A stretch of 64,000 nucleotides of DNA from positions 1 through 64,000 of the forward strand of contig CDRNVI010000029.1 of assembly GCA_977017575.1 (NCBI GenBank), read 5' to 3'. Position 1 is the first letter of the stretch. Every line of letters starts with the position of its first letter. Origin of the DNA: Paramoeba atlantica. Its lineage: Eukaryota > Protista > Discosea. A program made the translations under genes and the position numbers. The notes beneath the pieces were generated by a model. The model searched no databases. It was not told where the DNA came from and saw only the letters and a list, made by a program, of their open reading frames with translations. Shown in pieces: positions 1,175-62,600 of the stretch.

Positions 1175-4100
1175 ATGTCTGAAGACGATCTTCTCAAAGC
1201 CTCACCTCCGCCGATGGACGACGATTCATTTTTACAAGAGGAAGCAGTACACAATAGAGGATCCTGGGACCAGTTTGCTGGAAACGCACATCTCATTAAG
1301 CAACGGAGTACGTATAACGAATTGCTCTACACGACCCCTATTCCTGCGAACATTCCGGAAGAATGGAACATGAACGCCGCCTTGATCTCAACTGAGAACC
1401 AGACACGTGATACGGGACAGGTAGATAGTAGCGATGAGGAAACAAACCACTCACGAGTCATCAGATTACATCATGGACACCAAAAAATGCAATCTGATAG
1501 TAACACTATCACTAAAAAGTTTACTCGATGCCAACCATCTTCCACACCCCCAAGCGTCAAAGGGAATCGGGGAATCGTAAAGTCTCATCGAAAAGCGCGC
1601 GAACCAGCTACACCTCGAAAAGGGGAAGCGACGGAACATAACCCCGAAAACAACTCTCCACGCCAAATAATACAAGGAACTTCCCTTGAAATCCCACCTT
1701 CGACGAGCGAACCAGTTCTCACGTTTCCATCTTCCCAAAACCGTCCGACACAAAGGGAGTGCCCCGCAGAAAACTGTATTTGGAAAACTCGTGCCCATGG
1801 AGGTCAATGGCAGTCGTACTACAACCACGTTGCTTACCGACACGGAAATAACATACCCAATGACTGGTGGACAAAGGAAGGACGATTTCTCTGCGACGCA
1901 TGCGGTCGTCATTACGATATTAGCAAGAAAACTTCTCATTTGAATCATTGTAAAATGCAATCTACACCGCCCTCCTCGCAGCCGCCCTCACAACCACAGC
2001 AGCCTTCACAGCTGTCAGAGTCCGGAGAAGCCATGTACGATATGCAAGGTACGCATAGTCTACCGTCCCTAGAGGAAGTTTGCACGACCCAAATAAGCAC
2101 GTGCAAGGATGTCCCACACCGATGTCGATATCTGTGGACCAGAATTTTTACCGCAGCCCTCTCCACCGCGGTAAACGAAAACTCACTGAGAGCCTGGACC
2201 CTTCTTGCCTTGCTTCCGAAATGCGTCCTACCAGCCCCGTACCGAGGAGGCCGTAAAGCTCACAAGTCCTATACCTCCTACATCTCAAAGCGAATGGAAC
2301 TTTGGATACAAGGCCAATATACCACCCTATGGGCCCAAGCAAATTCGGAGCATGACAGGAAGCGCTCAAAAGTGCCGAATAATGAGATTGAGGGTGAAGA
2401 AGACAAGGCTGCAATACGGGCTGAAATTCTGGTTCGCCAAGGAGAATTTTCCCGAGGCATGGCTGCCCTTACTGCAGCTCCACTTGCACCATACAGCGAG
2501 GAAACCCTGCTAAAGCTGCAGGAAAAACACCCTAGCCCCCATGGTAATCCCATCTCGTGCCCCCTACCTCCCCTGGAAGAAGAAGCTTTAAAACTGGACG
2601 AATCCGAGGTAAGAAAAGCAGTAGATACCTTCCGTCGCGGATCCTCTGCTGGGACTATGGGGCTCCGGCCTGAACACCTCCAAACAGCGCTTCAAGAGCA
2701 CGTCGACCAGAATATGAATCCTCTTACGACGCTCACTTCCTTCGTAAACCATCTTCTAGCTGGCAAAGCCCCAGACGAAGTGCAACCTTTTTTTGCAGGG
2801 GCACGGCTATGCGCACTCGAAAAAGGGGAAGATGACGTGCGGCCTATCGCTGCGGGGGAAACCCTTAGACGCCTGGTGAGCAAGGCAGTATGCCTTTCGA
2901 TAAAAGAAAAAGCAGGATCCTTCTTTGGACGTCGTCAATACGGAGTCGCAGCGTCTGCTGGGGCGGAAAGAGTGATACACCTTTGTCGCCGTCTAATGAG
3001 AAATAATGAAGAAAATGAGAACATAACGTTCTGTAAGGTGGATCTTCGGAACGCCTTTAATAACGTGAGCCGACCCGTCTTCATCTTCCTCACACGAAAG
3101 CATTTCCCTGAACTATCCCCATGGGTAGAATGGTGTTATGCCAATCATAGCTGTCTTACATTCGGCGATGATTTTATCCCCTCGGCAGAAGGAGTGCAAC
3201 AAGGAGACCCTCTGGGCCCACTCCTCTTCTCTTTGGTGTTAGCAGAGGTAACAGAAGAAATTGCATCAAATTCTAACCTACGAACACAATTATGGTATTT
3301 AGATGACGGTGTGCTTGTAGGTGATCCCAAAGAAGTCCGTAAAGCCCTAGACGTCCTCGACGAGATAGGACCGAAGTGGGGACTCTTCCTGAATCTCTCC
3401 AAGTGCGAGATCATTACCCCCCCAGCATCAGCTCATACCTCCGTTTTCTTTCCTGACATCCCCAGTGATAAAATACGGTACGACGGGAACTTCGACATTC
3501 TTGGAAGCCCAATAGGCTCTGCGGAACACTGTGCGGAGTTTCTCATGACACACGCGATTGAACCAGCCCGCGAAACATTAGAAGCTACTGCTGTGTTAGA
3601 AGATCCCCAAATAGCTCTCGCACTAATACGGCAATGTTCGGGGTTTTGTCAGATGGTGTACGCACTGCGCACCACTCCTCCCCAAGCCCTTGGAGAATTA
3701 TGCCAAAAACTTGACTCTCATCTAGTCCAGGCCGTGGAGCACGCAATTTCTCCCTTAGGCGTCGCCGCTCGCGACCAAATACAACGACCAAAACGCCACG
3801 GCGGGTTCGGACTTCGCTCATCAATTCTCCACCAGTCAGCAGCCTACGTTTCTTCCGTCGCGCACGCCGCTAGCTTGGACAACTGGGACCCCACAGAAGC
3901 TGAGGGATTTTCCAGCTCAGCACATGACATAAATGACAAAGTTGGGACTGATCTGGTTGATCCATACACTGGACGCATTACCAAACCTAGTGTGCCTGGT
4001 GAATATCATGCAAATCGGAGCATCCTTTCCCGCCCAGCGAAAAGAAAACTCGCACTATCCCTCAATCACTCCCTTCTCCCGGTCTCGACGGATCAGGAAA

Positions 4101-4975
4101 AGATCATCCCGAGGCAAAAACATCTCAGCCAAGCTATCTCGGATAGGGAATTTCAAACGGCATATTCAAAGGCAGACGCAAGAACGCGGGCGCGATGGAT
4201 CTCGCAGTCCGGAAAAGGGGCCGGAAACTGGGCTTTCGCAACTCCCTCCAAGACCAGAGGCTACGCTTTCACTCACACGGAGTTTCGTACCCTAACACGC
4301 TGGTGGCTAGGCATGGGCGTCTTCCCCGAAGATCGGCCTTGCCCAGCTGACGGGTGCACCCTTCCCTTGCTCAAGAATGGAGAGCACGCTTTGCTCTGCA
4401 AGAACGGCCATGGTATCATCTCACGGCACAACGCTCTGGCCCAACAATTTACATCGTTCTGCAGCAGGGCCTTCCTGGCGCCACAGAGAGAGAAGAGTTT
4501 GGGAAATCGGGGTCCTGGGGGGGCTCTCACGAGACCAGCGGACGTATTTCTGCCAACGGCCTCCATCGCCAAAGGATCTTTAGCGCAAGGCATGGTCCTA
4601 GATTTTGCGGTCACTCACGCACAGCAAACAAAGTATTCGGACTCAGTCCACAATGCTAGCTGGGTGACCCCGGGGTCTTTTGCTGAGCACTTCGCGGAGA
4701 CCAAGGCGCGACAGCGACAAGAAGCAGAAAAAGCAGGACATCTCTTCACAGCGATGGTAGTGGAATCCTTTGGTTCCTGGAGCGAGAGTGCGCTAGCGTT
4801 ACTCCGGGACATCGGAACCCAACGGGCGAATGCGTCCAAAGGGCTCCTTTCACGAGACCAAGCGCGAAACGATCTCCTAACGGATCTGAACGTGACGCTA
4901 ATGCGTTCTCAAGCCAGGATGATGGTTTCGCGCATCCGCGTAGAGGACCCAGCGGATCCTTTGGTAGAGGCTTAA
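1175..4975 (+). CDS. Family A polyprotein, 1266 aa: LsmAD-like, C2H2 and CCHC Zn fingers, reverse transcriptase, Zn knuckle, RLE
   Basis: WDQF...STYNELLYTT; CPAENC...HVAYRH; RPIAAGE, DLRNAFN, QQGDPLGP, WYLDDG; HALLC...RHN, RPADV, LDFAV. Confidence 0.95.
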   Translation: MSEDDLLKASPPPMDDDSFLQEEAVHNRGSWDQFAGNAHLIKQRSTYNELLYTTPIPANIPEEWNMNAALISTENQTRDTGQVDSSDEETNHSRVIRLHHGHQKMQSDSNTITKKFTRCQPSSTPPSVKGNRGIVKSHRKAREPATPRKGEATEHNPENNSPRQIIQGTSLEIPPSTSEPVLTFPSSQNRPTQRECPAENCIWKTRAHGGQWQSYYNHVAYRHGNNIPNDWWTKEGRFLCDACGRHYDISKKTSHLNHCKMQSTPPSSQPPSQPQQPSQLSESGEAMYDMQGTHSLPSLEEVCTTQISTCKDVPHRCRYLWTRIFTAALSTAVNENSLRAWTLLALLPKCVLPAPYRGGRKAHKSYTSYISKRMELWIQGQYTTLWAQANSEHDRKRSKVPNNEIEGEEDKAAIRAEILVRQGEFSRGMAALTAAPLAPYSEETLLKLQEKHPSPHGNPISCPLPPLEEEALKLDESEVRKAVDTFRRGSSAGTMGLRPEHLQTALQEHVDQNMNPLTTLTSFVNHLLAGKAPDEVQPFFAGARLCALEKGEDDVRPIAAGETLRRLVSKAVCLSIKEKAGSFFGRRQYGVAASAGAERVIHLCRRLMRNNEENENITFCKVDLRNAFNNVSRPVFIFLTRKHFPELSPWVEWCYANHSCLTFGDDFIPSAEGVQQGDPLGPLLFSLVLAEVTEEIASNSNLRTQLWYLDDGVLVGDPKEVRKALDVLDEIGPKWGLFLNLSKCEIITPPASAHTSVFFPDIPSDKIRYDGNFDILGSPIGSAEHCAEFLMTHAIEPARETLEATAVLEDPQIALALIRQCSGFCQMVYALRTTPPQALGELCQKLDSHLVQAVEHAISPLGVAARDQIQRPKRHGGFGLRSSILHQSAAYVSSVAHAASLDNWDPTEAEGFSSSAHDINDKVGTDLVDPYTGRITKPSVPGEYHANRSILSRPAKRKLALSLNHSLLPVSTDQEKIIPRQKHLSQAISDREFQTAYSKADARTRARWISQSGKGAGNWAFATPSKTRGYAFTHTEFRTLTRWWLGMGVFPEDRPCPADGCTLPLLKNGEHALLCKNGHGIISRHNALAQQFTSFCSRAFLAPQREKSLGNRGPGGALTRPADVFLPTASIAKGSLAQGMVLDFAVTHAQQTKYSDSVHNASWVTPGSFAEHFAETKARQRQEAEKAGHLFTAMVVESFGSWSESALALLRDIGTQRANASKGLLSRDQARNDLLTDLNVTLMRSQARMMVSRIRVEDPADPLVEA

Positions 4976-5259: not shown

Positions 5260-5588
5260 ATTGGGCGTGGATTGCTTCCTTTTTTATTATTATTGTTATC
5301 AGAATCATAAATAACTTAAGGCAGGTTGAATTACTAGTTTTGGGCTACAACATGTGAAATTGCTAATTTGATTGCTTGTTTACAAATCATATACCCCCCC
5401 CAATGGACCTTCATGGTTCATGTATTGGGTAATATAGAGGCAATGCCGCTTTTCATACTTCTCCCCCCTTAAAAAAAAAAAAAAAAACGATAAAGATACG
5501 TTAAAGATACTTTAACGATAAAGATACAGTTTCTGTACCTTGTTGAATTTTTTTTTTACGTAGTATTCTCTCGGGGCCCAGCTCTTTT

Positions 5589-8500
5589 ATGACGCAAACC
5601 AATACTCCTCAGAGCCCCGCACGCTCGAACGAGGACCACCCCTCATTCCATATGAGTGCAAAGGAAGGAGCTCTCAGCGTAGGCGCTCTCGCCGACGAAG
5701 AACGTGCGCACTCTCTCGGCAGTTGGGACCAATTCCAAGGAAACAAGCATTTGATTCGCGCTGTCAGCACATACGACGAACAACTCTACACTACACCAAT
5801 CCCGGCGAATATTCCTAAGGAATGGTTGGAACGCGCACGTCACATCTCCCAGGAAAAGGAAACCCCAGACACGGGCCACGTAGAGGCCGAAGACGAGGAG
5901 ATGCAGCACTGTGGGGTGAGAAGGCAGAAAATTACTCACGAGGCTACACCCACATCAAAGATCCCCGATGAAGCTCGGACGCTCAAATCCGCAGTGAAGG
6001 ATGCTCTTTCCCACCAAGGTCGAAACACTTCCCCATCGAAAGGAGTTACCAAAGCGGACTCGCGCTCGTCAAGGCGAACACCGGAGCCCCGGACATATTT
6101 CTCTTCACCGCGACACGCCGCAAACCAAAATAACTTCGCTGAAAAGACACAAACAAGAGAAGAGACTCGGGAATGTCCGGCCATGGGATGCACTTGGAGA
6201 AGTCTGCCGCACGGAGGGTCTTGGCAAGCGTTTTATAACCACGTCGCGTGTCGCCACGGAAACGGAGTTCCCGCTACCTGGTGGGATGCAGAAGGCCGAT
6301 TTCTTTGCAACTTATGCGGGCGCCATTATGACATCAACAAAAGGGAAGCTCATCCACAAGCCTGCAAAGGGAACGTTGCGAACCCCCAAATCCCATCGCG
6401 CGCAGCACACTCGAGCGACCCAAGCCACCTTCCGGGGACTCAAACTCATCACTCTGAACTTCCCTCGCTATCCTCTATCTGCACGCTGCGCCTGAACACT
6501 TGCAAGGACGTGCCTCCACGTTGCCGTCAACTGTGGGGAGAAATTATCACCAAAGCAGCCCAAAACGCAGTCACCGAAAACTCTACAGCCGCGTGGACCC
6601 TATTCGCCATGCTCCCCAAGTGCTTACTACCCGCCCCACACCGAGGAGGACGTAAGAACCACACAACTTACGCATCATACGTCCAGAAGTGCATGAACCG
6701 ATGGCTCGCGCAAGATTATGTCTCCCTATGGAATGAAGCAGTAGACAACGCACTCAAGAAACAATCTGTAGCCCCTACAACCGTTCACGACGAAGAGGAA
6801 AAGGCAGCTATCCGAGCAGAGCTTCTAGCTCGACAAGGCGAGTACTCTAGGGGTATGGCTGCACTCACGGCGGATGCTATGGCGCCTGACGACGAAGACA
6901 CACTCCTCAAACTTCAGAGCAAGCACCCGCCCCGACATCCAGACAGTGACATCATCGACTATACGCCTCCGCCCACAGCGCCCCTAATAATGGATGAACC
7001 CGTGGTAGCGAAAACTATCAAGAGCTTTCACCGGGGTTCCTCGTCCGGAACCATGGGTTTACGACCCGAGCACTTGCAAGCTGTACTCCTGGCGCACGTA
7101 GATAACACCGTGAAACCCCTTACTGCCCTTAAAAACCTCGTGAATCATCTACTAGCCGGGAAAGAACCCCTAGAGGTACAACCATATTTTGCGGGAGCCA
7201 GACTTTGCGCGCTTGAAAAGGGCGAAAATGACGTCCGCCCCATAGCAGCGGGAGAAACGATACGTCGATTGGTAAGCAAAGCGGCTTGCAATGCAGTGAG
7301 GAGCAAAGCCAGGGAATTTTTTAAGGGACTACAGTTCGGCGTCGCGACACCGGCCGGTTCGGAACGAATAATTCACACTTGCCGGCACGCAATGACAATT
7401 CATACGGACAACCCCGACATGGTATTATGTAAAGTCGACCTAAGCAACGCATTCAACAACGTTAGCAGAGCAACTTTCTTGAAACTTGTAGGCGAACATT
7501 TTCCGGAATTGTTCCCCTGGGCTAGCTGGTGCTATACGACAACTAGTGCTTTGACCTATCGTGACCACACACTCCTTTCGGATGAAGGCGTCCAACAGGG
7601 CGATCCCCTGGGACCACTTTTCTTTTCACTGGTCTCCTTGGAACTTGCAAAAGAAATCTATCACCAGGCCGACCTGGACTTGCAGCTATGGTACCTAGAC
7701 GACGGGATTCTCATTGGCAGGGCAGAAGACGTCAGGAATTCGTTGGATACAATCGCCAGAGTAGGTCCGCGATGGGGCCTATATCTGAACATGTCCAAGT
7801 GCGAAATAATCACCCCCCCTGCCTCGGCTAACGTTGTAACCATATTTCCGGACATACCCGACGCCAAAATAAACGTGTGCGGTAACTTTAGTGTCCTAGG
7901 AAGCCCAATTGGGTCCCCTGAGTACTGTACTGAATATCTGCTGACACACGCGGTTGAGCCCGCTGAAATGGCCCTTGATGCCATAACCAGAATCCGGGAC
8001 CCCCAGGTAGCCATGGCGCTAATTCGACAATGTGCTGGATTCTGCAAATTGGTACATGCTCTACGAACGACGCCCCCGCAATCAGTTATGAACCTCTGCA
8101 AGCGGCTCGACGACTTCCTAATGCACGCGGTCGAATCCACTCTATGTCCTTTGCCTCCCTCCGCACGCGCCCAAATTCAGCGCTTGAAAAGACACGGAGG
8201 TTTCGGTTTAAAATCGGCGACCGTGCACGCATCCTCCGCTTACGCCTCCTCTGTAGTTTTCGCGGCGGCCACGGACTCATGGGATGCTTCAGAAGTGGAG
8301 GGCTTTCTACAATCGATTGAAGACGTGAATTCGAAAGTTGGTATCAGTCTACTCGACTCAAACGGACTCGTGCGTTCCATCCCGCGCCATAAATGTGAAG
8401 AACTCTCCCCCAAAGCTCGCTTCACCAAGAGATCTCGCGAGGGAGAAACCAGACATCCCTTTGAACCCGCAAATCCGCCTTCCCTTCCTCGTGACCGCGC

Positions 8501-9455
8501 ATTGCCTCATTCCGAAGACTTTCCACACGATACAAACCCCCTTTACGCATCCGAAGATTGCGTTGACGCGCAGCCACCCGACTGGGCAAGTAATAGCGTC
8601 CCCCGCCAAAAAGACATAAGTTACGCGATCTCTGCCACAGAGTTCTCGCACGCATATGAAAACGCCGACGCCCGGACTCGCGCACGCTGGGCTTCTCAGT
8701 GTGGTAAAGGAGCAAGCAGTTGGGCGTTCGTAACTCCTTCCAGAGACACGGGCCACGCCTTTAACCCCACAGAATTCCGCATCCTATCCCGCTGGTGGTT
8801 AGGTGTGCCCGTGTACGGGGAAGAAGGTACATGTCCCAAGGGGAACTGCACACCCCCATTGGACATACACGGCGATCACGCTCTCACATGCAAGCACGGG
8901 GACGGTATCATCGGCCGTCACAACGCCTTGGCCGATCACTTTGCCGATACTTGCAGTAACGCACGCCTAGCTCCCCAACGGGAAAAAAGCCTCGGGAACC
9001 GGGGCCCCGGAGGCGCTCTGACTAGGCCCGGGGACGTCTTCCTTCCGAGTCTCTTCCTCGGGAAACCTATCGTGCTTGACTTCGCGGTCACTCACGCCCA
9101 GCAATCTAAATACACGGACACAGTCCGAAATGCTAGCTGGGTGGCCGCGGGGTCCTTCGCAGAGCATTATGCCTCAGAGCAGAAAGTCCGACAACGCCGT
9201 GAATCTGAAGATGCCGGAAGCGATTTCACAGCTATGGTGGTCGAGAGCTATGGCTCTTGGAGTGCCAGTGCTTTAGCCGTTCTCCGGAAGGTTGGAGAAC
9301 GAAGGGCAAAAGCGTCCAACGGTATCTTGACAGACGAGGCCTCTACGCTCCGTCTCGTGACCGACATGAACGTAACATTGATGCGTTGCCAGGCACGCAT
9401 GATGATTACGCGCCTGCCGGCTGTGGACCCCTTGCCCCCTTTAATCGAGCAATAG
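5589..9455 (+). CDS. Family B polyprotein, 1288 aa: LsmAD-like, Zn fingers, RT, RLE
   Basis: WDQF...STYDEQLYTT; CPAMGC...HVACRH; QQGDPLGP; WYLDDG; HALTC...RHN; RPGDV; LDFAV. Confidence 0.95.
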   Translation: MTQTNTPQSPARSNEDHPSFHMSAKEGALSVGALADEERAHSLGSWDQFQGNKHLIRAVSTYDEQLYTTPIPANIPKEWLERARHISQEKETPDTGHVEAEDEEMQHCGVRRQKITHEATPTSKIPDEARTLKSAVKDALSHQGRNTSPSKGVTKADSRSSRRTPEPRTYFSSPRHAANQNNFAEKTQTREETRECPAMGCTWRSLPHGGSWQAFYNHVACRHGNGVPATWWDAEGRFLCNLCGRHYDINKREAHPQACKGNVANPQIPSRAAHSSDPSHLPGTQTHHSELPSLSSICTLRLNTCKDVPPRCRQLWGEIITKAAQNAVTENSTAAWTLFAMLPKCLLPAPHRGGRKNHTTYASYVQKCMNRWLAQDYVSLWNEAVDNALKKQSVAPTTVHDEEEKAAIRAELLARQGEYSRGMAALTADAMAPDDEDTLLKLQSKHPPRHPDSDIIDYTPPPTAPLIMDEPVVAKTIKSFHRGSSSGTMGLRPEHLQAVLLAHVDNTVKPLTALKNLVNHLLAGKEPLEVQPYFAGARLCALEKGENDVRPIAAGETIRRLVSKAACNAVRSKAREFFKGLQFGVATPAGSERIIHTCRHAMTIHTDNPDMVLCKVDLSNAFNNVSRATFLKLVGEHFPELFPWASWCYTTTSALTYRDHTLLSDEGVQQGDPLGPLFFSLVSLELAKEIYHQADLDLQLWYLDDGILIGRAEDVRNSLDTIARVGPRWGLYLNMSKCEIITPPASANVVTIFPDIPDAKINVCGNFSVLGSPIGSPEYCTEYLLTHAVEPAEMALDAITRIRDPQVAMALIRQCAGFCKLVHALRTTPPQSVMNLCKRLDDFLMHAVESTLCPLPPSARAQIQRLKRHGGFGLKSATVHASSAYASSVVFAAATDSWDASEVEGFLQSIEDVNSKVGISLLDSNGLVRSIPRHKCEELSPKARFTKRSREGETRHPFEPANPPSLPRDRALPHSEDFPHDTNPLYASEDCVDAQPPDWASNSVPRQKDISYAISATEFSHAYENADARTRARWASQCGKGASSWAFVTPSRDTGHAFNPTEFRILSRWWLGVPVYGEEGTCPKGNCTPPLDIHGDHALTCKHGDGIIGRHNALADHFADTCSNARLAPQREKSLGNRGPGGALTRPGDVFLPSLFLGKPIVLDFAVTHAQQSKYTDTVRNASWVAAGSFAEHYASEQKVRQRRESEDAGSDFTAMVVESYGSWSASALAVLRKVGERRAKASNGILTDEASTLRLVTDMNVTLMRCQARMMITRLPAVDPLPPLIEQ

Positions 9456-10033: not shown

Positions 10034-10879
10034 CTTTAACGATAAAGATACAGTTTCTGTACCTTGTTGAATTATTTTCTTTTCTTTATCTCACTCTTAC
10101 GCGCCATGGTTGTTTTAACTCGATCTAAGGCGAAGCAGGTCTCGAACTTCGAGCGCGAGGTGAAAGCACACACACTCGGCTGCTGGGACCAATTCGACGC
10201 AAACAAGGACCTTGTTAAAGGCAAGAGTACGTACCATGTAGACTTATACACTACACCCCTCCCACCTAATCCTTCAGCTGAATCTTTACGGCGAGCGGAC
10301 GAGATTGCACTCAGCATTACGAACTCTGTGGAAGGTGAGACCCCAGATACAGGGCAACAGCAGACAAGTACGGAAGAGGAACTTTTCTCCAGTGTCCGTC
10401 CAACTGAGGACTTCGAATTCCAGTTTGCGGGAGCAGAATCTTCTTCACTCAGCCTATCAAAAACCACAAATAAGGCTGTGAAGGAGAGGTGCGAACGACA
10501 TATCCGGAGGTCATACGACAACGAATATAATTACGAAAAAGATAAATTGCTCTTCCCCGATCTCACTCCTGAAGACCTTACTGTGTCTGTGAATGGATGC
10601 GGAAAAGGACGGAAAAAGAAGAAGCGACCCAAGAGCATCTCCCTTTCCCAATTGTGTGCTGAGTCCGGGGCCGACAGCGACGACCGTGACACCGCACAAT
10701 CAAGTTCCAACTCCCCTAGGCCATACACTCCTGAGGCTGAAAGTGACAGCAATCTGTCTGCGGCATCATCTCCGAAAAAACCGGACACAAAGCCCCATGC
10801 GGACACTTCAGTAAGTCTCAAGCGACACCGTACATACATATATAAAGTTAGAACTCGTACTCTTCCCCCCCTATTATCT

Positions 10880-10918: not shown

Positions 10919-11187
10919 GCTTGCCACTGATTGCCTTGTGACCCTGTTTCCCATGGGCAAGATTCCACAGGACATTTCCTGGTGCCATATTGGGCTTTAG
11001 TCGGCGTGCTTGCAAATGACTCGTCTTTTCCTGAGGCTGGGGGAACTCGATGGCGTTTGAGGTTTACCTCACTGGAATCGCAGCTCTCTTGGGTTGATGT
11101 ATGGTCTGTGGTCGTTTCATCGCTACTCTCGGAGCCCAAGTCCTTCCCTGGGGGGCTGGAGGTGACGTTCCGCTTGGGTCGTTTCTT
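10917..11187 (-). pseudogene. Inverted internal fragment F' (linker plus start of the C2H2 Zn finger)
   Basis: Minus strand reads ...NLKRHRVPP...CPVESCPWETGSQGNQWQA, homologous to the A/B/G Zn finger. Confidence 0.8.
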
Positions 11188-12184
11188 TTTCTGTACCTTG
11201 TTGTGTTTTTATTTTTATTTTTACTCGTATGAACACGCAAAACGCCGAACAAATTATGAAGAGGGGATCAACGCTCAAGCCGACAGCACACGAACGAATT
11301 CACAAGCTGCACGCACCCAGCTAAGAAAGAGCATGAAGAATGAACACGAGAAGACAGCAGCAGAATTGAATGCAATACCGAGATTCCAAAATATCATAAA
11401 GCGAACGAAGGAGGCGAACAATCACTTAGATTCAACGTGCAACTACGTAAATCCATATCTTTTTCGTTACACTCTAATGATGCGCCTAGGAATTGCTCTA
11501 AGTAATGTGTCAGGCGAGATTACATGCCCTGGATGTGGAACAATCGAAACATCAAGCAAAATCATTCCTCACGTAGCGGGATGTTCACGATGTGCTGGCA
11601 TGAATTGCACGAGAAAACATTCTCATTTGGTACGCTATATTGCCGAAATGTGTTCCAAAGCTGGTCTTCCATGTGCGATCGAACCTCGTATTCATGCGTC
11701 CTTTTTTTGCACCAAATGCAAGTGCTCAATTTCCCCAGAAGCGGCGGAATACCATCCTTGCCGAGCGCGTCGAATTAGATCTGGCCCAGACCTAGCGATT
11801 ATGTGGCCAGATGTTGGAGAAATTTTATACGACGTTACCGTGGTACATACGTGCTGCAGCAGCTATGCAAAGCAGAGCAGCAATGCCCTGCTGCAGAGTG
11901 CGGAAGAGCGGAAGATAGCAAAATATGTCAAAGAAAAAGGTCTTGATCCAGAATGCTTTCGCTGCATAGCTGTGACAGATTGTGGAGTACTACATGAAGA
12001 GACAAAGGTTTTGCTGAAAACATTGGCGAAAAGAAATGATGTTGATTACAAGATTGTACGAGAAGCTTTTCAACTTGAACTGGAAAAATATTCAGCCTAT
12101 GCAGTCGTCTCTCAATTGCGCCAATATATAGAAACCGAGAAATGGGTAGGAGGACTCCGTCTTTAAACACTCCTCTGAATATTA

Positions 12185-13277: not shown

Positions 13278-13390
13278 GTGTTTAATACAGTTGAAGTCAT
13301 GTTGCGCGGTGAATTCCTAGATCTTTTGACTGTATTTTGATCACTAGTTTCCTGATTATCGTTTTTGTACCTGTTAAAAAAAAAAAAAAA

Positions 13391-16300
13391 CATCCTGAAG
13401 ATTGCGAAGGCGCCTCCGATGATACCACAGGCGAAGAATCTGATGTGATGTCGGTGGATGAGGAAGTGACGTCGATGGATGGGGAAGTGGGGCAACGCAA
13501 AAACGAAGAATTTCCGAAGGCTCCAGATCACATCAACACCATTATCCATGAATGGGGCAAAGGAACGACGTGCGAACTGAGATGGGGATTCAAAAAAGAG
13601 CAGAAATATGCCTCAAAAGGAGTAGTGGTGAAGAGGACTGTCCGAAAAGGTATTGTAAAGCTGAAGGTGGAATACAAGCCAAGCGACGGAGACAATGGAC
13701 CCTCTGGTTTTATCTACCTTCCTCCATCTGCAAAAGTGAAAATTTGGTCCATTAAGGCACTGTGTCTAAATAAAGTAAAAAGCGTCGATGTGTCAATGGA
13801 AAACACTGGAAATTCAGAGAACAAGGAGGAGCGAGGCATTGAGGGAACATCTGATTTGGAACCGCTGCCAAAGATGGCACAAATTGATCCAACGTTTGCC
13901 GTCCATGTAATCGCGATTTTTCGTTCCATTATTAAAGCGTACCCGAAGGCTCAGACAGAAGCAGAAAGAACTGTTATCTGGCACAAACTCCTCGATACAC
14001 CACGGGACTCTTTGGCCACAATCCGTCTAAACTACCTACGGCGCCAGAGCTCCGTACAGCGTCGAGGGAGACGTGAGTGGGAAACTATCGATACGAACAT
14101 TACCGAGGAAGAACGACTTGTACAAGAAGTAGACAAACGATCAATTCGAAATGCATTGCAAGCAGCAAAGGCAGGAAATCTTGGAAAAGCTACCCGCATA
14201 CTCGACAATGTTTACAAGGACTCTGCTCTTCCACTCTGGGAAAAGGTTGACAAACTTCGAGATCTACACCCCAAAGGCCCTACACCTCAAACTTCTGATC
14301 GAGACTTCCCGCGAATTGCGATATTGGAACCTTCTGAACTTCGTCTAGCGACTGAAAAATTGTCAAAAGGTGCAGCTCCTGGCCCGACAGGTCTGAGTGA
14401 AAGCATGATGCGAATTTTAGTGGAGGACGAAGAATCCTGCCTTTCACTCTGCCACATGCTGAGAGACGTCATAAATGGGGAAGTTGCGAAAAGTGTCCGA
14501 GTAAGATTAACACGATGCAGAATGATAGCCCTTGCAAAACCGAACAATGGAATACGACCGGTTGCAATGGGGGAAACGCTGCTAAAAATTTGCGGTTGTA
14601 TCCTCCTTGAGCGCCATGCGAACTCCTTGTCAGACATATTCCAACCGATCCAAAGAGGCATATTACAAAAGAATGCATGTGAGTCCATTGTACATGAACT
14701 TTTGGAAGAGCATGAAGCTGGAGCCACAATTTTGACGATTGACTTCAAGAATGCATACAATACGCCACAACGTACGGCAATAGAAGAAGCGCTCCTTCAA
14801 TACCCGGTATTCAAACACTTTATGCGAATGTTCTATTTTGAATATGGTCAACCATCGGAACTTTTATTTTTCGCCAACGACTCATTACATTCCGTGATCG
14901 AAAGCTCGTCTGGGGTCCGTCAAGGATCAGCACTCTCTTCGGTTTATTTTTGCGCACTGCTACAAGGTCCTTTGAAAGAAATTGCGAAGCTCTATCCAGA
15001 GGTTACTATCAGAGCCTACCAGGACGATGTGACGATGAGCTCCAAAAATGAGTCGTCTTTGGAAGTTGCGTTCCTTCACCTCAAAGAACTAGCAAGTGGT
15101 CTGAATCTTGAAATTAATTCCCGTAAATGCGAAGTATTCCAAGGCAACAGTTCAACGAATAATCGAGGGATGGATCTCAAGGAACTTGGGGTGGAAGACT
15201 GTGTGGATTCCATCAAGGTCCTAGGAGCATACATCGGGCATAATAAAGCCGTTGAACGAAAGCTCTTGGAGAAGTTAGGGAAACATAAATGTTTATTTCG
15301 AAGACTTCGCGCTATGGGTCCCAGCAACTTGTCACTAGCGATTCTCAAGCGATGTACCATACCCCGTCATGATTACCACCTTCGAGTCCACAAACCTGGA
15401 GCTTCGTTTCTTCTTGCCCAGGTGTTCGACGAGGAAATCCATGAGATCTTAAAGAAATGGTGTGGTGCAGATAGTGAAGCACTTAAACTCTCTGCCCTCC
15501 CATGTAAAATGGGAGGTCTAGGAATCACCTCAACCGTTCTAAAGCAACGCTACTTTTTCGAAGCGTCCCTAAAATCTATTGATGAGCGATCGAAACCCAT
15601 TAATGCTCCGGTAGATAAGGGAGGCAAGAAACAAGCCGACAGCACACGAACGAATTCACAAGCTGCACGCACCCAGCTAAGAAAGAGCATGAAGAATGAA
15701 CACGAGAAGACAGCAGCAGAATTGAATGCAATACCGAGATTCCAAAATATCATAAAGCGAACGAAGGAGGCGAACAATCACTTAGATTCAACGTGCAACT
15801 ACGTAAATCCATATCTTTTTCGTTACACTCTAATGATGCGCCTAGGAATTGCTCTAAGTAATGTGTCAGGCGAGATTACATGCCCTGGATGTGGAACAAT
15901 CGAAACATCAAGCAAAATCATTCCTCACGTAGCGGGATGTTCACGATGTGCTGGCATGAATTGCACGAGAAAACATTCTCATTTGGTACGCTATATTGCC
16001 GAAATGTGTTCCAAAGCTGGTCTTCCATGTGCGATCGAACCTCGTATTCATGCGTCCTTTTTTTGCACCAAATGCAAGTGCTCAATTTCCCCAGAAGCGG
16101 CGGAATACCATCCTTGCCGAGCGCGTCGAATTAGATCTGGCCCAGACCTAGCGATTATGTGGCCAGATGTTGGAGAAATTTTATACGACGTTACCGTGGT
16201 ACATACGTGCTGCAGCAGCTATGCAAAGCAGAGCAGCAATGCCCTGCTGCAGAGTGCGGAAGAGCGGAAGATAGCAAAATATGTCAAAGAAAAAGGTCTT

Positions 16301-16522
16301 GGTCCAGAATGCTTTCGCTGCATAGCTGTGACAGATTGTGGAGTACTACATGAAGAGACAAAGGTTTTGCTGAAAACATTGGCGAAAAGAAATGATGTTG
16401 ATTACAAGATTGTACGAGAAGCTTTTCAACTTGAACTGGAAAAATATTCAGCCTATGCAGTCGTCTCTCAATTGCGCCAATATATAGAAACCGAGAAATG
16501 GGTAGGAGGACTCCGTCTTTAA
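13391..16522 (+). CDS. Family E RT-RLE ORF, 5'-truncated (divergent CRE/SLACS-like)
   Basis: RPVAMGE, DFKNAYN, GVRQGS, YQDD, CPGC...HVAGC, GPDL...YDVTV...KIAKY; the track start at 13337 runs through an upstream A run and is artefactual. Confidence 0.9.
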   Translation, partial: HPEDCEGASDDTTGEESDVMSVDEEVTSMDGEVGQRKNEEFPKAPDHINTIIHEWGKGTTCELRWGFKKEQKYASKGVVVKRTVRKGIVKLKVEYKPSDGDNGPSGFIYLPPSAKVKIWSIKALCLNKVKSVDVSMENTGNSENKEERGIEGTSDLEPLPKMAQIDPTFAVHVIAIFRSIIKAYPKAQTEAERTVIWHKLLDTPRDSLATIRLNYLRRQSSVQRRGRREWETIDTNITEEERLVQEVDKRSIRNALQAAKAGNLGKATRILDNVYKDSALPLWEKVDKLRDLHPKGPTPQTSDRDFPRIAILEPSELRLATEKLSKGAAPGPTGLSESMMRILVEDEESCLSLCHMLRDVINGEVAKSVRVRLTRCRMIALAKPNNGIRPVAMGETLLKICGCILLERHANSLSDIFQPIQRGILQKNACESIVHELLEEHEAGATILTIDFKNAYNTPQRTAIEEALLQYPVFKHFMRMFYFEYGQPSELLFFANDSLHSVIESSSGVRQGSALSSVYFCALLQGPLKEIAKLYPEVTIRAYQDDVTMSSKNESSLEVAFLHLKELASGLNLEINSRKCEVFQGNSSTNNRGMDLKELGVEDCVDSIKVLGAYIGHNKAVERKLLEKLGKHKCLFRRLRAMGPSNLSLAILKRCTIPRHDYHLRVHKPGASFLLAQVFDEEIHEILKKWCGADSEALKLSALPCKMGGLGITSTVLKQRYFFEASLKSIDERSKPINAPVDKGGKKQADSTRTNSQAARTQLRKSMKNEHEKTAAELNAIPRFQNIIKRTKEANNHLDSTCNYVNPYLFRYTLMMRLGIALSNVSGEITCPGCGTIETSSKIIPHVAGCSRCAGMNCTRKHSHLVRYIAEMCSKAGLPCAIEPRIHASFFCTKCKCSISPEAAEYHPCRARRIRSGPDLAIMWPDVGEILYDVTVVHTCCSSYAKQSSNALLQSAEERKIAKYVKEKGLGPECFRCIAVTDCGVLHEETKVLLKTLAKRNDVDYKIVREAFQLELEKYSAYAVVSQLRQYIETEKWVGGLRL

Positions 16523-17112: not shown

Positions 17113-17588
17113 TCATTTTTTCTTGTGTTTCTGCGGATCGTTCGATACAGAAAAGTCCAGATTCGGAGGTGTGAGATCGGGAAACGCTAGGATACTGGAA
17201 CCATATGTGTGGTGGTGACCTTCCGATTTCCGAAAATAACGCATGCGCTGCTCCTTCACAGCCTTGTTGGATGACTTTAACTGGCTGGGTGAAGGATCAT
17301 CTGCTCCCACGAATCGAAAACCTGAGGGGCAAGAAGACGAAGTAGAAGAGTCCGCTTCTTCAGACTGGACGTCGGATTGCTCGGTCGGACGGACTCTGGA
17401 GAAAAGTTCCTCCTCCGAGTTCGGTTGCGCGTGTCCAGTATCAGGAGTTGCACCTTCCCTAGAGTTTGTAATGCTGATCGCAATCTCGTCGGCGCGCTGC
17501 GTTGATTCGGGCGAAGGGTACGGTGGAAGAGGCGTCGTATACAGTTCTTCGGCGTACGTGCTCGCACCTTTTACGAGGTCTTTGTTTC
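17113..17588 (-). pseudogene. Fragment H: LsmAD-like domain plus conserved linker, ending ...DPQKHKKK-stop
   Basis: Open minus frame NKDLVKGASTYAEELYTTPLPP...RADEIAISI...EEELFSRVR...FPDLTP. Confidence 0.85.
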
Positions 17589-20775: not shown

Positions 20776-23700
20776 GCAATTAATAGGGGGGAAGAGTATG
20801 AGTTCTAACTTTCTATGAATGTACGGTATCAGTTTTTTTTTTTTTTTTTTCAAATTTATCTCTATAAATCAATCTACAACAAATCACTCTATTTGACGAA
20901 ACCAAACTAAAGAAAAGAAAAAGAAAAGAAAAATGCATCACCCTCTAATTCAGGAGCAGAGGTGGATCCGGGTCATCTTCTGCCATCCGCGCCACCATCA
21001 TACGAGCCTGAGCTCGCATTAAAGTGACATTCAAGTCACGGATGAGATTTGCCGTCGCCGTTCCCCTGTCCATCGTCCCTTGGGACGTAGCAGAGCGCCA
21101 CGCTCCAACCTTCTTAAGCACAGCGAGGGCGCTGTCGGACCACGAGCCATAGGAGCCTACGACCATGGCCGCGAAGTCGTGCCCAGCAGTCTCGGCGTCC
21201 CGTCGCTGCACCTGCTTATGGCTTGTGGCATAGCTCTCGGCGAATGATCCCGCCGTCACCCCGTTAGCGTTACGGACGAGGTCCGCGTATTTGGGTTGCT
21301 GAACGTGGGTAACGGCGAAATCAAGCACCAGAGACTTGCCTAAGCCAATGCTGGGCAAAACGACATCACCAGGCCTCGTGGGCGCTCCAGCGGGACCGCG
21401 ATTGCCAAGACTTACCTCCCGTTGGGGGGCGAGGTGCGCCTTACTGCAGAAATCGACAAATTGACACGCCAACGCGTTGTGGCGCGTCATGATGCCATGT
21501 CCACACTTACAGGACACGGCATGGTCGCCTTTTGGTCCCAACGGTTGCTGACACCTCCCCATAGGACAGGGCCGCGTTCCGGGGTAAATGTCTGCTCCCA
21601 ACCACCAGCGGGACAAGGCGCGAAACTCAGTAGGAGTGTAAGAGTATCCTCTCTCCTTGGAGGGAATAACGAATGCCCAACTCGCGGCCCCTCTCCCAGT
21701 TTGCGAAATCAAACGTGCGCGTGTGTTGAAGTCTGCTGCCTCATATGCTGAAGAAAATTCCCGGTCGCCTATCTCGCGACAAAGGTGTTTCTGTCGCGGG
21801 ATAATCAGCTTTTCATTCATCCCGGCATCTAGGCTGTGATCATGGTGTGCATTGAGAGGGTTGGTTGATGCGTTATAATCTTTGTGGATTAGTGCCTCCT
21901 GTATTTTGCCGGTTGTCGAATCCACCAAAGTCTTTCCCGCCTGGCGGTTAACACGCTCCACTGCCTCGGAAAACCATTTCGCCTCGGACGGTGCCCAGTC
22001 ATCTTGAGAACCCGCAAAGGCTGCTGAAGAGACATAAGCTGCAGATGAATGTATAACGGAGGATCTTAGGCCAAAACCACCGTGTCTCTTGTCGCGTTGG
22101 ATTTGTGCTCGTGCCGGGGCGTCTAGAGGACAGAGTATAAGCTCCGTAGCGCGGAGCACGGCGTTATCAAGCCTCTGACAGAGGTCTACCATGTATTTTG
22201 GTGGCGTTGTGCGGAGGGAGTAGACTAATTGGCAAAAGCCAGCGCAGTGGCGAATTAGCGTGAGGGCTACCTGTGGGTCTTCTAGTATGCCTATCGCCTT
22301 TAGAGTTGCTTCCGCAGGTTCGATCGCAAACTCACGTAGGTATTCAATACAGAACTCTTCTGACCCTACTGGGCTACCCAAAATGCTAAAGTTTCCTTCG
22401 TGATTTTTCATTCTGGCTGGGATGGTAGTGAATGAGTCCGTGCAACGCGAGGATACCGGATGAGATATTATCTCGCATTTACTCGCATTAAGATGGAGCC
22501 CCCACTGAGGTCCCGCACATGCTATAGCATCCAACGCCCTCCGTACGCTGTCGGATTTTCCGGCTAAAACACCGTCATCGAGATACCAAAGGTGCAAGAG
22601 GAGTCCGCTGGGCACTTCATTCTCGATCAGTTCAGTAATCTCTCGCAGAACCATGGAGAAAAGGAGGGGCCCTAAAGGGTCCCCCTGTTGAACTCCTTCG
22701 GTGGAGGCAACTGTTTGAGAACCATATGTGAGTGCGCTATCGGTGGAGTAGCACCAATTTATCCAAGGAGTCAACTCGGGGAAGTGCTTTTCTGATAGAG
22801 ATATGAACGCCGCCCTGGAAACCGTATTGAATGCGTTACGAAGGTCCACCTTGCATAAGACAAACTCTGGGTCATTCTTTGTGGACTCCACCACTTGGCG
22901 GCAGAGGTGGATAACCCTTTCGGAGCCAGATGCCGTTGCCACACCATATTGACGTCCTTGGAAAAGTGTGCTAGCTTTGGACTTTACAACAGAGCAGGCA
23001 GCCTTGCTGACCATGCGGCGCAACGTTTCCCCTGCTGCGATAGGTCTTACATCATTTTGCCCTTTCTGCAATGCACACAATCGAGCCCCTGCGTAATATT
23101 GTTGTGCTTCAACTGGAGCCTTACCGGCGAGTAGGTGATTGGCAAGCTTTGTGAGACTCTCGAGGGGATGAACATCCGTGTCAGTTCCAGCGAATAATGC
23201 CGCTTGTATGTGTTCCGCTCGTAGCGCCATGGTTCCACCTGAGGAGCCCCTGTTAAAGCTTTGGATCGCCTTTCGTACATCATCCTCATTGACAGTCAAG
23301 GAAATGATTTCGTTGGAGGACGGTGCGCTTTGGCGTAGTGGACCGAACAGCCGGCTCGGGTGCTTGGTGACTAGTTTGTTATATGTCTCCTCATTGTCGG
23401 GTGCCATTGGCGCCGAAGTGAGTGCAGCTATTCCTCGAGAAACTTCTCCTTGACGGACCAGTAGTTCGGAGCGAATCGCTTTCTTTTCCTCATCCAGTAG
23501 TGTACCTGCTCCGGATCCTTGCTTCCTCTTCTTCTGGTGTTCAAGTACAGCTTCTTTCCACAGGGCTGAATATTCGTGTGCTTCCCAGCGATCCAGACAT
23601 TTCCGCACGTGGGAGGCGTACGAGCTATTTCCCTTTCGTCCTCTTCTATGCGGGGCTGGAAGGACACATTTCGGAAGCATCGCTAGTCGTGTCCATGCAG

Positions 23701-51900: not shown

Positions 51901-53452
51901 GTAAACCCATGGTTCCGGACGAGGAACCCCGGTGAAAGCTCTTGATAGTTTTCGCTACCACGGGTTCATCCATTATTAGGGGCGCTGTGGGCGGAGGCGA
52001 TAGTCGATGATGTCACTGTCTGGATGTCGGGGCGGGTGCTTGCTCTGAAGTTTGAGGAGTGTGTCTTCGTCGTCAGGCGCCATAGCATCCGCCGTGAGTG
52101 CAGCCATACCCCTAGAGTACTCGCCTTGTCGAGCTAGAAGCTCTGCTCGGATAGCTGCCTTTTCCTCTTCGTCGTGAACGGTTGTAGGGGCTACAGATTG
52201 TTTCTTGAGTGCGTTGTCTACTGCTTCATTCCATAGGGAGACATAATCTTGCGCGAGCCATCGGTTCATGCACTTCTGGACGTATGATGCGTAAGTTGTG
52301 TGGTTCTTACGTCCTCCTCGGTGTGGGGCGGGTAGTAAGCACTTGGGGAGCATGGCGAATAGGGTCCACGCGGCTGTAGAGTTTTCGGTGACTGCGTTTT
52401 GGGCTGCTTTGGTGATAATTTCTCCCCACAGTTGACGGCAACGTGGAGGCACGTCCTTGCAAGTGTTCAGGCGCAGCGTGCAGATAGAGGATAGCGAGGG
52501 AAGTTCAGAGTGATGAGTTTGAGTCCCCGGAAGGTGGCTTGGGTCGCTCGAGTGTGCTGCGCGCGATGGGATTTGGGGGTTCGCAACGTTCCCTTTGCAG
52601 GCTTGTGGATGAGCTTCCCTTTTGTTGATGTCATAATGGCGCCCGCATAAGTTGCAAAGAAATCGGCCTTCTGCATCCCACCAGGTAGCGGGAACTCCGT
52701 TTCCGTGGCGACACGCGACGTGGTTATAAAACGCTTGCCAAGACCCTCCGTGCGGCAGACTTCTCCAAGTGCATCCCATGGCCGGACATTCCCGAGTCTC
52801 TTCTCTTGTTTGTGTCTTTTCAGCGAAGTTATTTTGGTTTGCGGCGTGTCGCGGTGAAGAGAAATATGTCCGGGGCTCCGGTGTTCGCCTTGACGAGCGC
52901 GAGTCCGCTTTGGTCACTCCTTTCGATGGGGAAGTGTTTCGACCTTGGTGGGAAAGAGCATCCTTCACTGCGGATTTGAGCGTCCGAGCTTCATCGGGGA
53001 TCTTTGATGTGGGTGTAGCCTCGTGAGTAATTTTCTGCCTTCTCACCCCACAGTGCTGCATCTCCTCGTCTTCGGCCTCTACGTGGCCCGTGTCTGGGGT
53101 TTCCTTTTCCTGGGAGATGTGACGTGCGCGTTCCAACCATTCCTTAGGAATATTCGCCGGGATTGGTGTAGTGTAGAGTTGTTCGTCGTATGTGCTGACA
53201 GCGCGAATCAAATGCTTGTTTCCTTGGAATTGGTCCCAACTGCCGAGAGAGTGCGCACGTTCTTCGTCGGCGAGAGCGCCTACGCTGAGAGCTCCTTCCT
53301 TTGCACTCATATGGAATGAGGGGTGGTCCTCGTTCGAGCGTGCGGGGCTCTGAGGAGTATTGGTTTGCGTCATAAAAGAGCTGGGCCCCGAGAGAATACT
53401 ACGTAAAAAAAAATTCAACAAGGTACAGAAACTGTATCTTTATCGTTAAAGT
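48971..53452 (-). mobile_element. Full-length family B copy 2 (SL at 53416-53452; structured RNA 49215-49452)
   Basis: Reverse complement near-identical to B1. Confidence 0.92.
49508..53373 (-). pseudogene. Family B ORF split by a 1-nt deletion near 51990
   Basis: Track gives 481-aa and 821-aa pieces; ggcgatagtc here versus ggcgtatagtc expected from B1; could be a sequencing error. Confidence 0.75.
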
Positions 53453-59685: not shown

Positions 59686-62600
59686 ACTTTAACGATAAAG
59701 ATACAGTTTCTGTACCTTGTTGAAATTTTTTTTTACGTAGTATTCTCTCGGGGCCCAGCTCTTTTATGACGCAAACCAATACTCCTCAGAGCCCCGCACG
59801 CTCGAACGAGGACCACCCCTCATTCCATATGAGTGCAAAGGAAGGAGCTCTCAGCGTAGGCGCTCTCGCCGACGAAGAACGTGCGCACTCTCTCGGCAGT
59901 TGGGACCAATTCCAAGGAAACAAGCATTTGATTCGCGCTGTCAGCACATACGACGAACAACTCTACACTACACCAATCCCGGCGAATATTCCTAAGGAAT
60001 GGTTGGAACGCGCACGTCACATCTCCCAGGAAAAGGAAACCCCAGACACGGGCCACGTAGAGGCCGAAGACGAGGAGATGCAGCACTGTGGGGTGAGAAG
60101 GCAGAAAATTACTCACGAGGCTACACCCACATCAAAGATCCCCGATGAAGCTCGGACGCTCAAATCCGCAGTGAAGGATGCTCTTTCCCACCAAGGTCGA
60201 AACACTTCCCCATCGAAAGGAGTGACCAAAGCGGACTCGCGCTCGTCAAGGCGAACACCGGAGCCCCGGACATATTTCTCTTCACCGCGACACGCCGCAA
60301 ACCAAAATAACTTCGCTGAAAAGACACAAACAAGAGAAGAGACTCGGGAATGTCCGGCCATGGGATGCACTTGGAGAAGTCTGCCGCACGGAGGGTCTTG
60401 GCAAGCGTTTTATAACCACGTCGCGTGTCGCCACGGAAACGGAGTTCCCGCTACCTGGTGGGATGCAGAAGGCCGATTTCTTTGCAACTTATGCGGGCGC
60501 CATTATGACATCAACAAAAGGGAAGCTCATCCACAAGCCTGCAAAGGGAACGTTGCGAACCCCCAAATCCCATCGCGCGCAGCACACTCGAGCGACCCAA
60601 GCCACCTTCCGGGGACTCAAACTCATCACTCTGAACTTCCCTCGCTATCCTCTATCTGCACGCTGCGCCTGAACACTTGCAAGGACGTGCCTCCACGTTG
60701 CCGTCAACTGTGGGGAGAAATTATCACCAAAGCAGCCCAAAACGCAGTCACCGAAAACTCTACAGCCGCGTGGACCCTATTCGCCATGCTCCCCAAGTGC
60801 TTACTACCCGCCCCACACCGAGGAGGACGTAAGAACCACACAACTTACGCATCATACGTCCAGAAGTGCATGAACCGATGGCTCGCGCAAGATTATGTCT
60901 CCCTATGGAATGAAGCAGTAGACAACGCACTCAAGAAACAATCTGTAGCCCCTACAACCGTTCACGACGAAGAGGAAAAGGCAGCTATCCGAGCAGAGCT
61001 TCTAGCTCGACAAGGCGAGTACTCTAGGGGTATGGCTGCACTCACGGCGGATGCTATGGCGCCTGACGACGAAGACACACTCCTCAAACTTCAGAGCAAG
61101 CACCCGCCCCGACATCCAGACAGTGACATCATCGACTATACGCCTCCGCCCACAGCGCCCCTAATAATGGATGAACCCGTGGTAGCGAAAACTATCAAGA
61201 GCTTTCACCGGGGTTCCTCGTCCGGAACCATGGGTTTACGACCCGAGCACTTGCAAGCTGTACTCCTGGCGCACGTAGATAACACCGTGAAACCCCTTAC
61301 TTCCCTTAAAAACCTCGTGAATCATCTACTAGCCGGGAAAGCACCCCTAGAGGTACAACCATATTTTGCGGGAGCCAGACTTTGCGCGCTTGAAAAGGGC
61401 GAAAATGACGTCCGCCCCATAGCAGCGGGAGAAACGATACGTCGATTGGTAAGCAAAGCGGCTTGCAATGCAGTGAGGAGCAAAGCCAGGGAATTTTTTA
61501 AGGGACTACAGTTCGGCGTCGCGACACCGGCCGGTTCGGAACGAATAATTCACACTTGCCGGCACGCAATGACAATTCATACGGACAACCCCGACATGGT
61601 ATTATGTAAAGTCGACCTAAGCAACGCATTCAACAACGTTAGCAGAGCAACTTTCTTGAAACTTGTAGGCGAACATTTTCCGGAATTGTTCCCCTGGGCT
61701 AGCTGGTGCTATACGACAACTAGTGCTTTGACCTATCGTGACCACACACTCCTTTCGGATGAAGGCGTCCAACAGGGCGATCCCCTGGGACCACTTTTCT
61801 TTTCACTGGTCTCCTTGGAACTTGCAAAAGAAATCTATCACCAGGCCGACCTGGACTTGCAGCTATGGTACCTAGACGACGGGATTCTCATTGGCAGGGC
61901 AGAAGACGTCAGGAATTCGTTGGATACAATCGCCAGAGTAGGTCCGCGATGGGGCCTATATCTGAACATGTCCAAGTGCGAAATAATCACCCCCCCTGCC
62001 TCGGCTAACGTTGTAACCATATTTCCGGACATACCCGACGCCAAAATAAACGTGTGCGGTAACTTTAGTGTCCTAGGAAGCCCAATTGGGTCCCCTGAGT
62101 ACTGTACTGAATATCTGCTGACACACGCGGTTGAGCCCGCTGAAATGGCCCTTGATGCCATAACCAGAATCCGGGACCCCCAGGTAGCCATGGCGCTAAT
62201 TCGACAATGTGCTGGATTCTGCAAATTGGTACATGCTCTACGAACGACGCCCCCGCAATCAGTTATGAACCTCTGCAAGCGGCTCGACGACTTCCTAATG
62301 CACGCGGTCGAATCCACTCTATGTCCTTTGCCTCCCTCCGCACGCGCCCAAATTCAGCGCTTGAAAAGACACGGAGGTTTCGGTTTAAAATCGGCGACCG
62401 TGCACGCATCCTCCGCTTACGCCTCCTCTGTAGTTTTCGCGGCGGCCACGGACTCATGGGATGCTTCAGAAGTGGAGGGCTTTCTACAATCGATTGAAGA
62501 CGTGAATTCGAAAGTTGGTATCAGTCTACTCGACTCAAACGGACTCGTGCGTTCCATCCCGCGCCATAAATGTGAAGAACTCTCCCCCAAAGCTCGCTTC

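Follow-up and report, generated by a model that had tools for sequence, protein, structure and literature searches.

The question raised by this locus is why a retrotransposon should open with a piece of Ataxin-2. The window, by which we mean the whole 64,000-nucleotide (nt) stretch analysed here (positions 1 to 64,000, forward strand, of contig CDRNVI010000029.1 in the Paramoeba atlantica assembly GCA_977017575.1), is built of poly(A)-tailed retrotransposons of the non-LTR (non-long-terminal-repeat) type, arrayed head to tail, whose single open reading frame (ORF) carries zinc fingers, a reverse transcriptase (RT) and a CCHC motif together with a restriction-like endonuclease (RLE). The ORF of families A, B, F, G and H opens with an LsmAD of ~77-83 amino acids (aa), the domain found directly after LSm in Ataxin-2/Pbp1/PBP1 proteins. 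From algae to humans LsmAD has been conserved, and it is present in the disease gene ATXN2, which is associated with SCA2 (spinocerebellar ataxia type 2) and with risk of amyotrophic lateral sclerosis (ALS). The best overall explanation, to which we assign a probability of roughly 0.8, is that the domain is a genuine LsmAD, that it was captured in the host lineage, and that it would dock the element protein on a host factor; the docking function taken by itself is proposed more tentatively.

Location and motif of the element-borne LsmAD

A six-frame scan of the window for the pattern W-DQF..N..STY..LYTT and searches with the Pfam model placed the domain as follows.

1235..1465, + strand: LsmAD of element A, aa 21-97 of a 1266-aa ORF; motif at 1265; Pfam 20 bits
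5694..5924, + strand: LsmAD of element B, aa 36-112 of a 1288-aa ORF (5589-9455); motif at 5724
59871..60101, + strand: LsmAD of a second intact B copy, ORF 59766-63632; motif at 59901
53038..53268, - strand: LsmAD of a third B copy with a split ORF (51976-53421 and 49508-51973); motif at 53238
10154..10402, + strand: LsmAD of element F; motif at 10184; six-frame Pfam match 10223-10399, 27.4 bits
54917..55165, + strand: LsmAD of element G, ORF 54845-58408, 1187 aa; motif at 54947
17389..17562, - strand: partial LsmAD of element H, C-terminal half to two thirds, without W-DQF; 24.5 bits in six frames

The span 1256-1466, near the start of the element A ORF (1175-4975), encodes exactly the peptide quoted in an initial annotation of this DNA, which had claimed that five divergent families share the motif. 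This held, position included, for A, B, F and G, and failed in part for H, where STY..LYTT is present and W-DQF is missing. The H domain runs from STY onward only, and the stop immediately upstream of it marks H as a copy that is 5'-truncated and begins within LsmAD. The F copy is broken ~250 codons downstream of its domain, leaving an open frame of 294 aa. The alignment of LsmADs from the five families contains 18 invariant columns. A T-x-D-T-G (usually T-P-D-T-G) is invariant in the element domains and stands where the longer stretch N-x-H..E-E-R-G is found in cellular LsmADs.

Identification of the domain as LsmAD

The LsmAD identity had been proposed in the initial annotation, and Pfam PF06741 and a reverse profile search agree on it from both directions. 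The curated cut-off of PF06741 is 25 bits, and the N-terminal pieces of the element proteins gave E-values of 1.9e-5 to 9e-4. The Pfam check on these pieces that the initial annotation had suggested came out positive for element B (25.5 bits) and below the cut-off for element A (20 bits, E=9e-4). Element G scored 19.6 bits as a whole protein, 24.5 bits in the six-frame search and 25.5 bits with neighbours in frame, while a full-length relative of 1401 aa scored 28.9 bits and carries RVT_1 in the same ORF. The PF06741 model begins after W-DQF, so that W-DQF adds nothing to the Pfam scores, although it aligns to the PBP1 protein of the host, described below. Six-frame translation of the genome (45.7 Mb, 248 contigs) yielded 102 PF06741 matches, most of them above 25 bits and up to 37.5 bits, lying mostly in open frames of 1300-1450 aa.

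For the reverse search, a profile of seven element LsmADs was run against 1.84 billion representative proteins (E<=1e-3). It recovered 1186 proteins and, with them, the Ataxin-2 family. The first ~35 matches were element-type, with the domain at residues 15-110, and those long enough also matched the RT body. Behind them came proteins with the domain at residues 150-250; those checked had the architecture SM-ATX plus LsmAD, with or without PAM2, at ~1e-11. By a language-model feature search, the ESM Atlas cluster nearest to the element B piece was 'LsmAD domain-containing protein' (score 0.91). No solved LsmAD structure came out of a PDB sequence search that used the element profile. The AF2 model of the element domain, built from a 106-row alignment (mean pLDDT 75, pTM 0.37), contains one 16-residue helix and three short ones, the remainder being extended, and this mostly extended chain fits the poor folding reported for lone LsmAD (PMC11898529).

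In Ataxin-2 proteins the domain has neighbours. For SM-ATX, neither Pfam nor phmmer with the host LSm domain gave a match in any element protein. PAM2, the motif bound by PABP, gave no match to PF07145 in the element proteins, a short motif of which a divergent copy could still be present. Judged by profile and alignment, then, the N-terminal domain of families A, B, F, G and H is a genuine LsmAD, and by the same searches the elements carry it alone, with neither LSm nor PAM2 taken.

Retention of the domain under purifying selection

Comparisons between families show saturation at synonymous sites (dS >1.2 or undefined). Nonsynonymous divergence (dN) was compared between LsmAD and the 150-300 codons that follow it. 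In the F-type group dN was 0.11-0.25 for LsmAD, roughly half the 0.31-0.53 of the following codons; in the A/B group the values were 0.35-0.53 against 0.45-0.99. Where omega could be estimated, it was 0.07-0.10 for LsmAD and 0.18-0.41 downstream. Low dN with saturated dS indicates that the domain is kept by purifying selection, and the dN/dS comparison across families that had been suggested as a check returned an omega of at most ~0.1 where it could be estimated.

These values bear on whether the domain could be a functionless passenger, either the relic of a chance insertion next to PBP1 or an assembly chimera. Some copies are indeed truncated or broken (H, F and one B copy). Elsewhere the LsmAD lies in frame within intact ORFs (1187-1401 aa) of many families, spread over many contigs; it has been retained while synonymous sites became saturated, and it carries element-specific invariants such as T-x-D-T-G. 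The genome-wide matches and the selection result already contradict a passenger, which we regard as highly improbable.

Probable origin in the PBP1 of the host lineage

The host has an Ataxin-2/PBP1 orthologue on contig C44, with a second copy on C66, in which SM-ATX (31.5 bits) is followed by LsmAD (49 bits). Residues 1-230 of this protein gave no match in a word-based search for homologues. By BLASTP, element B is 45% identical to host PBP1 over 92 aa (E=3e-17), and an F-type element is 56% identical over 50 aa. The alignment to PBP1 spans from ~10 residues before W-DQF to the acidic E-E..S-x-V end. Scored with the element profile, host PBP1 reached 70.9 bits and other Ataxin-2 proteins at most 63; the sole cellular score above host PBP1 was 80.8 bits, for P0040, which comes from a metagenome and has another kind of N-terminus.

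A maximum-likelihood tree of 165 LsmADs (93 columns) placed all 44 element LsmADs in one clade, with the host protein P0043 inside it. A 91/96 branch separated the elements, host PBP1 and P0040 from 118 other LsmADs. The tree of the RT body, rooted on Diplonema papillatum elements, repeats the main groups of the LsmAD tree (A with P0010; B with P0003 and P0008; G with L016 and P0172). The single clade, the branch on the PBP1 side and the agreement of the RT tree point to a single, old capture from host-lineage PBP1 at an early stage of the elements' local radiation, followed by co-divergence with the RT; the direction of transfer is inferred. The claim that a host RNP (ribonucleoprotein) domain was captured and retained is thus supported by profile searches both ways, by host PBP1 as the nearest true Ataxin-2 orthologue, by the single clade and by purifying selection.

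Diplonemid proteins with the order PDZ-LsmAD-RRM were considered as donor and rejected: their total scores are raised by 2-3 domain copies, and at ~55 bits per domain they fall below host PBP1.

Several other loci with related domains were recorded. P0043 (C48:75506-75688 and C90:85141-85323; L025:4001-5083) is a 360-aa host protein with an unassigned N-terminal part, a C-terminal LsmAD, no LSm and a long branch; it may reflect domestication of an element's domain, or else an artefact of that long branch. An AT-rich Ataxin-2-like gene (C163:169015-169329, locus L015) has an LsmAD split by intron-like gaps and a D-E-E-D-L-Y-S-G-V of the fungal/animal type; host PBP1, unlike this gene, is intron-free, and contig C163 may derive from a different organism within the assembly. 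In ENA assembly ERZ24900291, P0035 and P0036 combine an element-type N-terminal LsmAD with an RT remnant that contains Y-V-D-D and does not match the RT body of the window families; they may represent a further RT lineage sharing the module, or a copy with an internal deletion. The single-copy genes looked at occur twice, with the same frame length or near-identical, on the contig pairs C44/C66, C39/C40, C48/C90 and C10/C58, which suggests an assembly of two haplotypes or of a duplicated genome.

Family D and the exchangeable N-terminus

One family of the window has the same RT-RLE body and lacks the LsmAD.

20945-25027, - strand: family D element, 1360 aa
25269-29351, - strand: identical copy
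36317-40399, - strand: identical copy

In place of LsmAD, the family D protein begins with two Cys-rich repeats and a long hydrophobic stretch, and Pfam finds only RVT_1 in it. In the RT tree, family D is nested within a 99/99 clade of LsmAD-bearing families. It follows that D replaced its module and that the N-terminal slot is exchangeable.

Possible function of the element LsmAD

Published work narrows the possible roles. LsmAD by itself is reported to fold poorly and to lack RNA binding, and it improves both the folding and the AU-rich RNA binding of an adjacent LSm domain (PMC11898529). LSM12 binds LSm and not LsmAD (PMC11166328), and DDX6 is reported, in a citation within PMC12898128, to bind the LSm/LsmAD region. 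In Trypanosoma brucei, PBP1 nucleates a complex of MKT1, LSM12, XAC1 and PABP, DHH1 is relatively abundant in XAC1 purifications, and tethering of PBP1 or its partners to a reporter mRNA raised expression (bioRxiv 10.1101/2020.03.02.973057). Retroelements are known to use P-body factors: Ty3 requires Dhh1, and not Pbp1 (PMC4589538).

One use of the domain would be in handling RNA in cis, with LsmAD helping the element protein to bind or chaperone its own RNA, for example an A-rich or U-rich 3' end. The effect on LSm reported above would suit such a role, as would the poly(A) ends of the elements, and cis-capture of poly(A) RNA had been among the functions initially proposed, next to an action on granule factors. 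The elements have no LSm domain to assist, however, and family D manages without LsmAD, which makes this role improbable.

Since LsmAD is found free of LSm in other proteins as well, we prefer a docking module, tentatively, that ties the element protein to the host partner of LsmAD. The domain would be a short, largely extended module with one main helix, folding upon its partner. Through it the element protein would dock on the host factor that normally binds the LsmAD of PBP1, and by cis-preference the capped, polyadenylated mRNA of the element would be brought in too, with consequences for the translation, stability or granule location of the element RNP. The candidate partner would be a helicase of the DDX6/DHH1 type, the only one in the literature, and there for the combined LSm/LsmAD region only. 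In a more specific form, LsmAD would be an autonomous motif for one conserved host partner, through which the elements plug their RNP into a PBP1-centred hub (the MKT1-PBP1-LSM12-XAC1-PABP complex, or DHH1); we consider this form possible and on balance doubtful. A co-fold of the host PBP1 LSm with the element LsmAD scored 0.00, with the fold of the partner itself uncertain, and so speaks neither for nor against binding. The LSM12 profiles PF09793 and PF21166 had no match in the genome, but their controls matched nowhere either. A second SM-ATX-like gene (C39/C40) was considered as LSM12 and rejected, as it looks by eye like the SCD6/LSM14 type, with RGG and FDF motifs.

The same binding could instead serve competition, the element LsmAD acting as a decoy that occupies the LsmAD partner of host PBP1 and so disables PBP1-dependent repression or sequestration of element RNA. 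A competitor would need just such a stand-alone interaction motif, and only LsmAD was taken, without the LSm, PAM2 and disordered regions that carry the other functions of PBP1; with hundreds of copies, the dose could be high. The tethering results in T. brucei, in which PBP1 raised expression, run the other way, as blocking an activator offers no obvious gain, and a competitor needs no fusion in cis to the RT. We judge a decoy unlikely, if a little less so than RNA handling.

Several observations weigh against a docking LsmAD derived from host PBP1. Taken alone, A (20 bits) and G (19.6 bits) miss the Pfam cut-off, though both can be aligned with the others over their whole length. Among cellular sequences the nearest is P0040, another LsmAD fusion and not PBP1, so the donor could be another LsmAD gene of the lineage. 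The key branch of the LsmAD tree, at 91/96, is not above 95 and comes from 93 columns, and P0004 is placed differently in the LsmAD and RT trees. Family D, with three identical full-length copies, is evidently active without LsmAD, which implies that the module is dispensable for retrotransposition as such. Lastly, run X5, the one listed run that may be RNA (none is recorded as such), contained no transcripts of element bodies and had the spliced-leader stretch only.

Element architecture and probable spliced-leader 5' ends

The window contains 16 ORFs of at least 300 aa, nearly all encoding one kind of RT protein. Element A illustrates the layout.

1175..4975, + strand: single ORF of element A, 1266 aa, with LsmAD, low-complexity linker, zinc fingers, RT, CCHC and endonuclease motif in this order
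1760-1843 and 1892-1951, + strand: two zinc-finger motifs
~2822-3463, + strand: RT, with YLDD at 3296-3307; RVT_1 68 bits, aa 550-763
4340-4399, + strand: CCHC
4532-4612, + strand: restriction-like endonuclease motif RPAD..D-x-V (motif only)
5472..5487, + strand: poly(A) tail, with the spliced-leader 5' end of element B directly after it

The element proteins score 56-68 bits with RVT_1. RT, CCHC and a PD..D-type endonuclease motif in a single ORF, together with a poly(A) tail, are the features of RLE non-LTR elements, the endonuclease being assigned by motif. Each element closes in oligo(A), with the start of the next one immediately behind it. Every full-length copy, family D included, opens with the same 24-mer ~20-75 nt upstream of the ATG and right after the poly(A) of another copy. 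This 24-mer occurs 9 times in the window, against 0 expected, and 752 times in the genome.

1106-1129, + strand: 24-mer at the 5' end of element A, after the previous oligo(A)
5523-5546, + strand: 24-mer
10047-10070, + strand: 24-mer
54772-54795, + strand: 24-mer
59700-59723, + strand: 24-mer
25050-25073, - strand: 24-mer
29382-29405, - strand: 24-mer
40430-40453, - strand: 24-mer
53415-53438, - strand: 24-mer

The stretch 5510-5557 recurs at the ends of unrelated contigs in run X5 (whose RNA nature is a guess), and these continue into unlike sequence. Because unrelated contigs end in it, the 24-mer stretch is most likely the spliced leader of the organism, similar to that of kinetoplastids and diplonemids. 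The starts of the elements would then reflect either trans-spliced mRNAs copied to their very 5' end or the use of the spliced leader as an insertion target; the latter would account for the arrays.

Further features of the array were observed. At 5488-5522, between the poly(A) of A and the spliced leader of B, lie partial repeats of the 5' part of the leader (CGATAAAGATAC, GTTAAAGATAC), whose appearance suggests target-site duplications that were stacked up as insertion recurred at one leader site. Ahead of element A, at 816-1092, is a string of short oligo(A)-tailed fragments with the look of insertions at the same target that were abortive or severely 5'-truncated. ORFs at 10931-12166 and 13337-16522, downstream of the F copy that is broken, belong to another element type, with the C-terminal motif W-P-D-V..Y-D-V-T-V-V-H, and are probably a different retrotransposon family inserted in the array.

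Novelty and significance

The initial annotation knew of no LsmAD-bearing non-LTR element, and our searches of the text literature likewise gave no paper that describes one. When published full text was searched for LsmAD with retrotransposon, nothing relevant was returned. A 2026 survey of Ataxin-2 chimeric proteins (PMC12898128) makes no mention of reverse transcriptase or transposons, and a 2025 paper on the trypanosomatid mobilome (PMC12278014) describes CRE elements without LsmAD.

The elements keep LsmAD alone, free of LSm and PAM2, across dozens of diverging retrotransposon families, and its maintenance by selection argues for a function of its own. Their many variants map the residues that matter in LsmAD. 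To the host modules captured by mobile elements they would add a new kind, drawn from the machinery of mRNA fate, and family D shows that N-terminal modules are swapped in these elements. If docking to one conserved partner is true, the stand-alone element LsmADs with their T-x-D-T-G would be a natural tool to find the long-sought ligand of the Ataxin-2 LsmAD.

Comparison with known systems

The LsmADs of Ataxin-2, yeast Pbp1 and kinetoplastid PBP1 share with the element domain W-DQF, N, STY, LYTT, the A-E-x-I-A helix and the E-E..S-x-V end, and the LsmAD of host PBP1 is 45-56% identical to it. The element domain differs in standing alone, N-terminal to an RT-endonuclease, with no SM-ATX/LSm before it and no PAM2 after it, and its stretch from the helix to the acidic end is ~10 residues shorter than in cellular LsmADs.

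In their single ORF, zinc fingers, RT, C-terminal RLE, poly(A) and spliced-leader association, the window elements resemble the CRE clade (SLACS, CZAR, CRE1/2) (PMC12278014). The published map of trypanosomatid CRE elements shows RT, RLE, zinc fingers and internal repeats, and no LsmAD (PMC12278014). Unlike CRE elements, the window copies abut each other's spliced-leader ends in arrays and apparently do not lie within repeats of the spliced-leader RNA gene. Their nearest named RT relatives are hypothetical proteins of D. papillatum, 23-27% identical and without LsmAD; the genome paper of that species mentions SLACS-like RTs (PMC10161547). The CRE label is therefore applied here provisionally, by architecture and spliced-leader association and not by an RT tree with reference CRE elements.

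Other non-LTR elements also carry host modules, namely an RRM in L1 ORF1p, an esterase or PHD in some ORF1s and a Ulp1-type protease in NeSL. Like these, the element LsmAD is a cellular N-terminal accessory added to an RT core and kept by selection. None of them derives from Ataxin-2, however, and the window module lies in the same polypeptide as the RT.

LsmAD without LSm is also found in cellular proteins. The diplonemid PDZ-LsmAD(x2-3)-RRM proteins (P0025, which is D. papillatum KAJ9472136; P0028, a Flectonema neradi transcript; also P0033, P0039 and P0048) form a clade of their own (100/97), away from the element domains, and a fungal protein of Tephrocybe rancida (KAG6907410, P0041) joins three LsmADs to a kinase. 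These diplonemid and fungal fusions show LsmAD to be a more promiscuous module than its name would lead one to expect.

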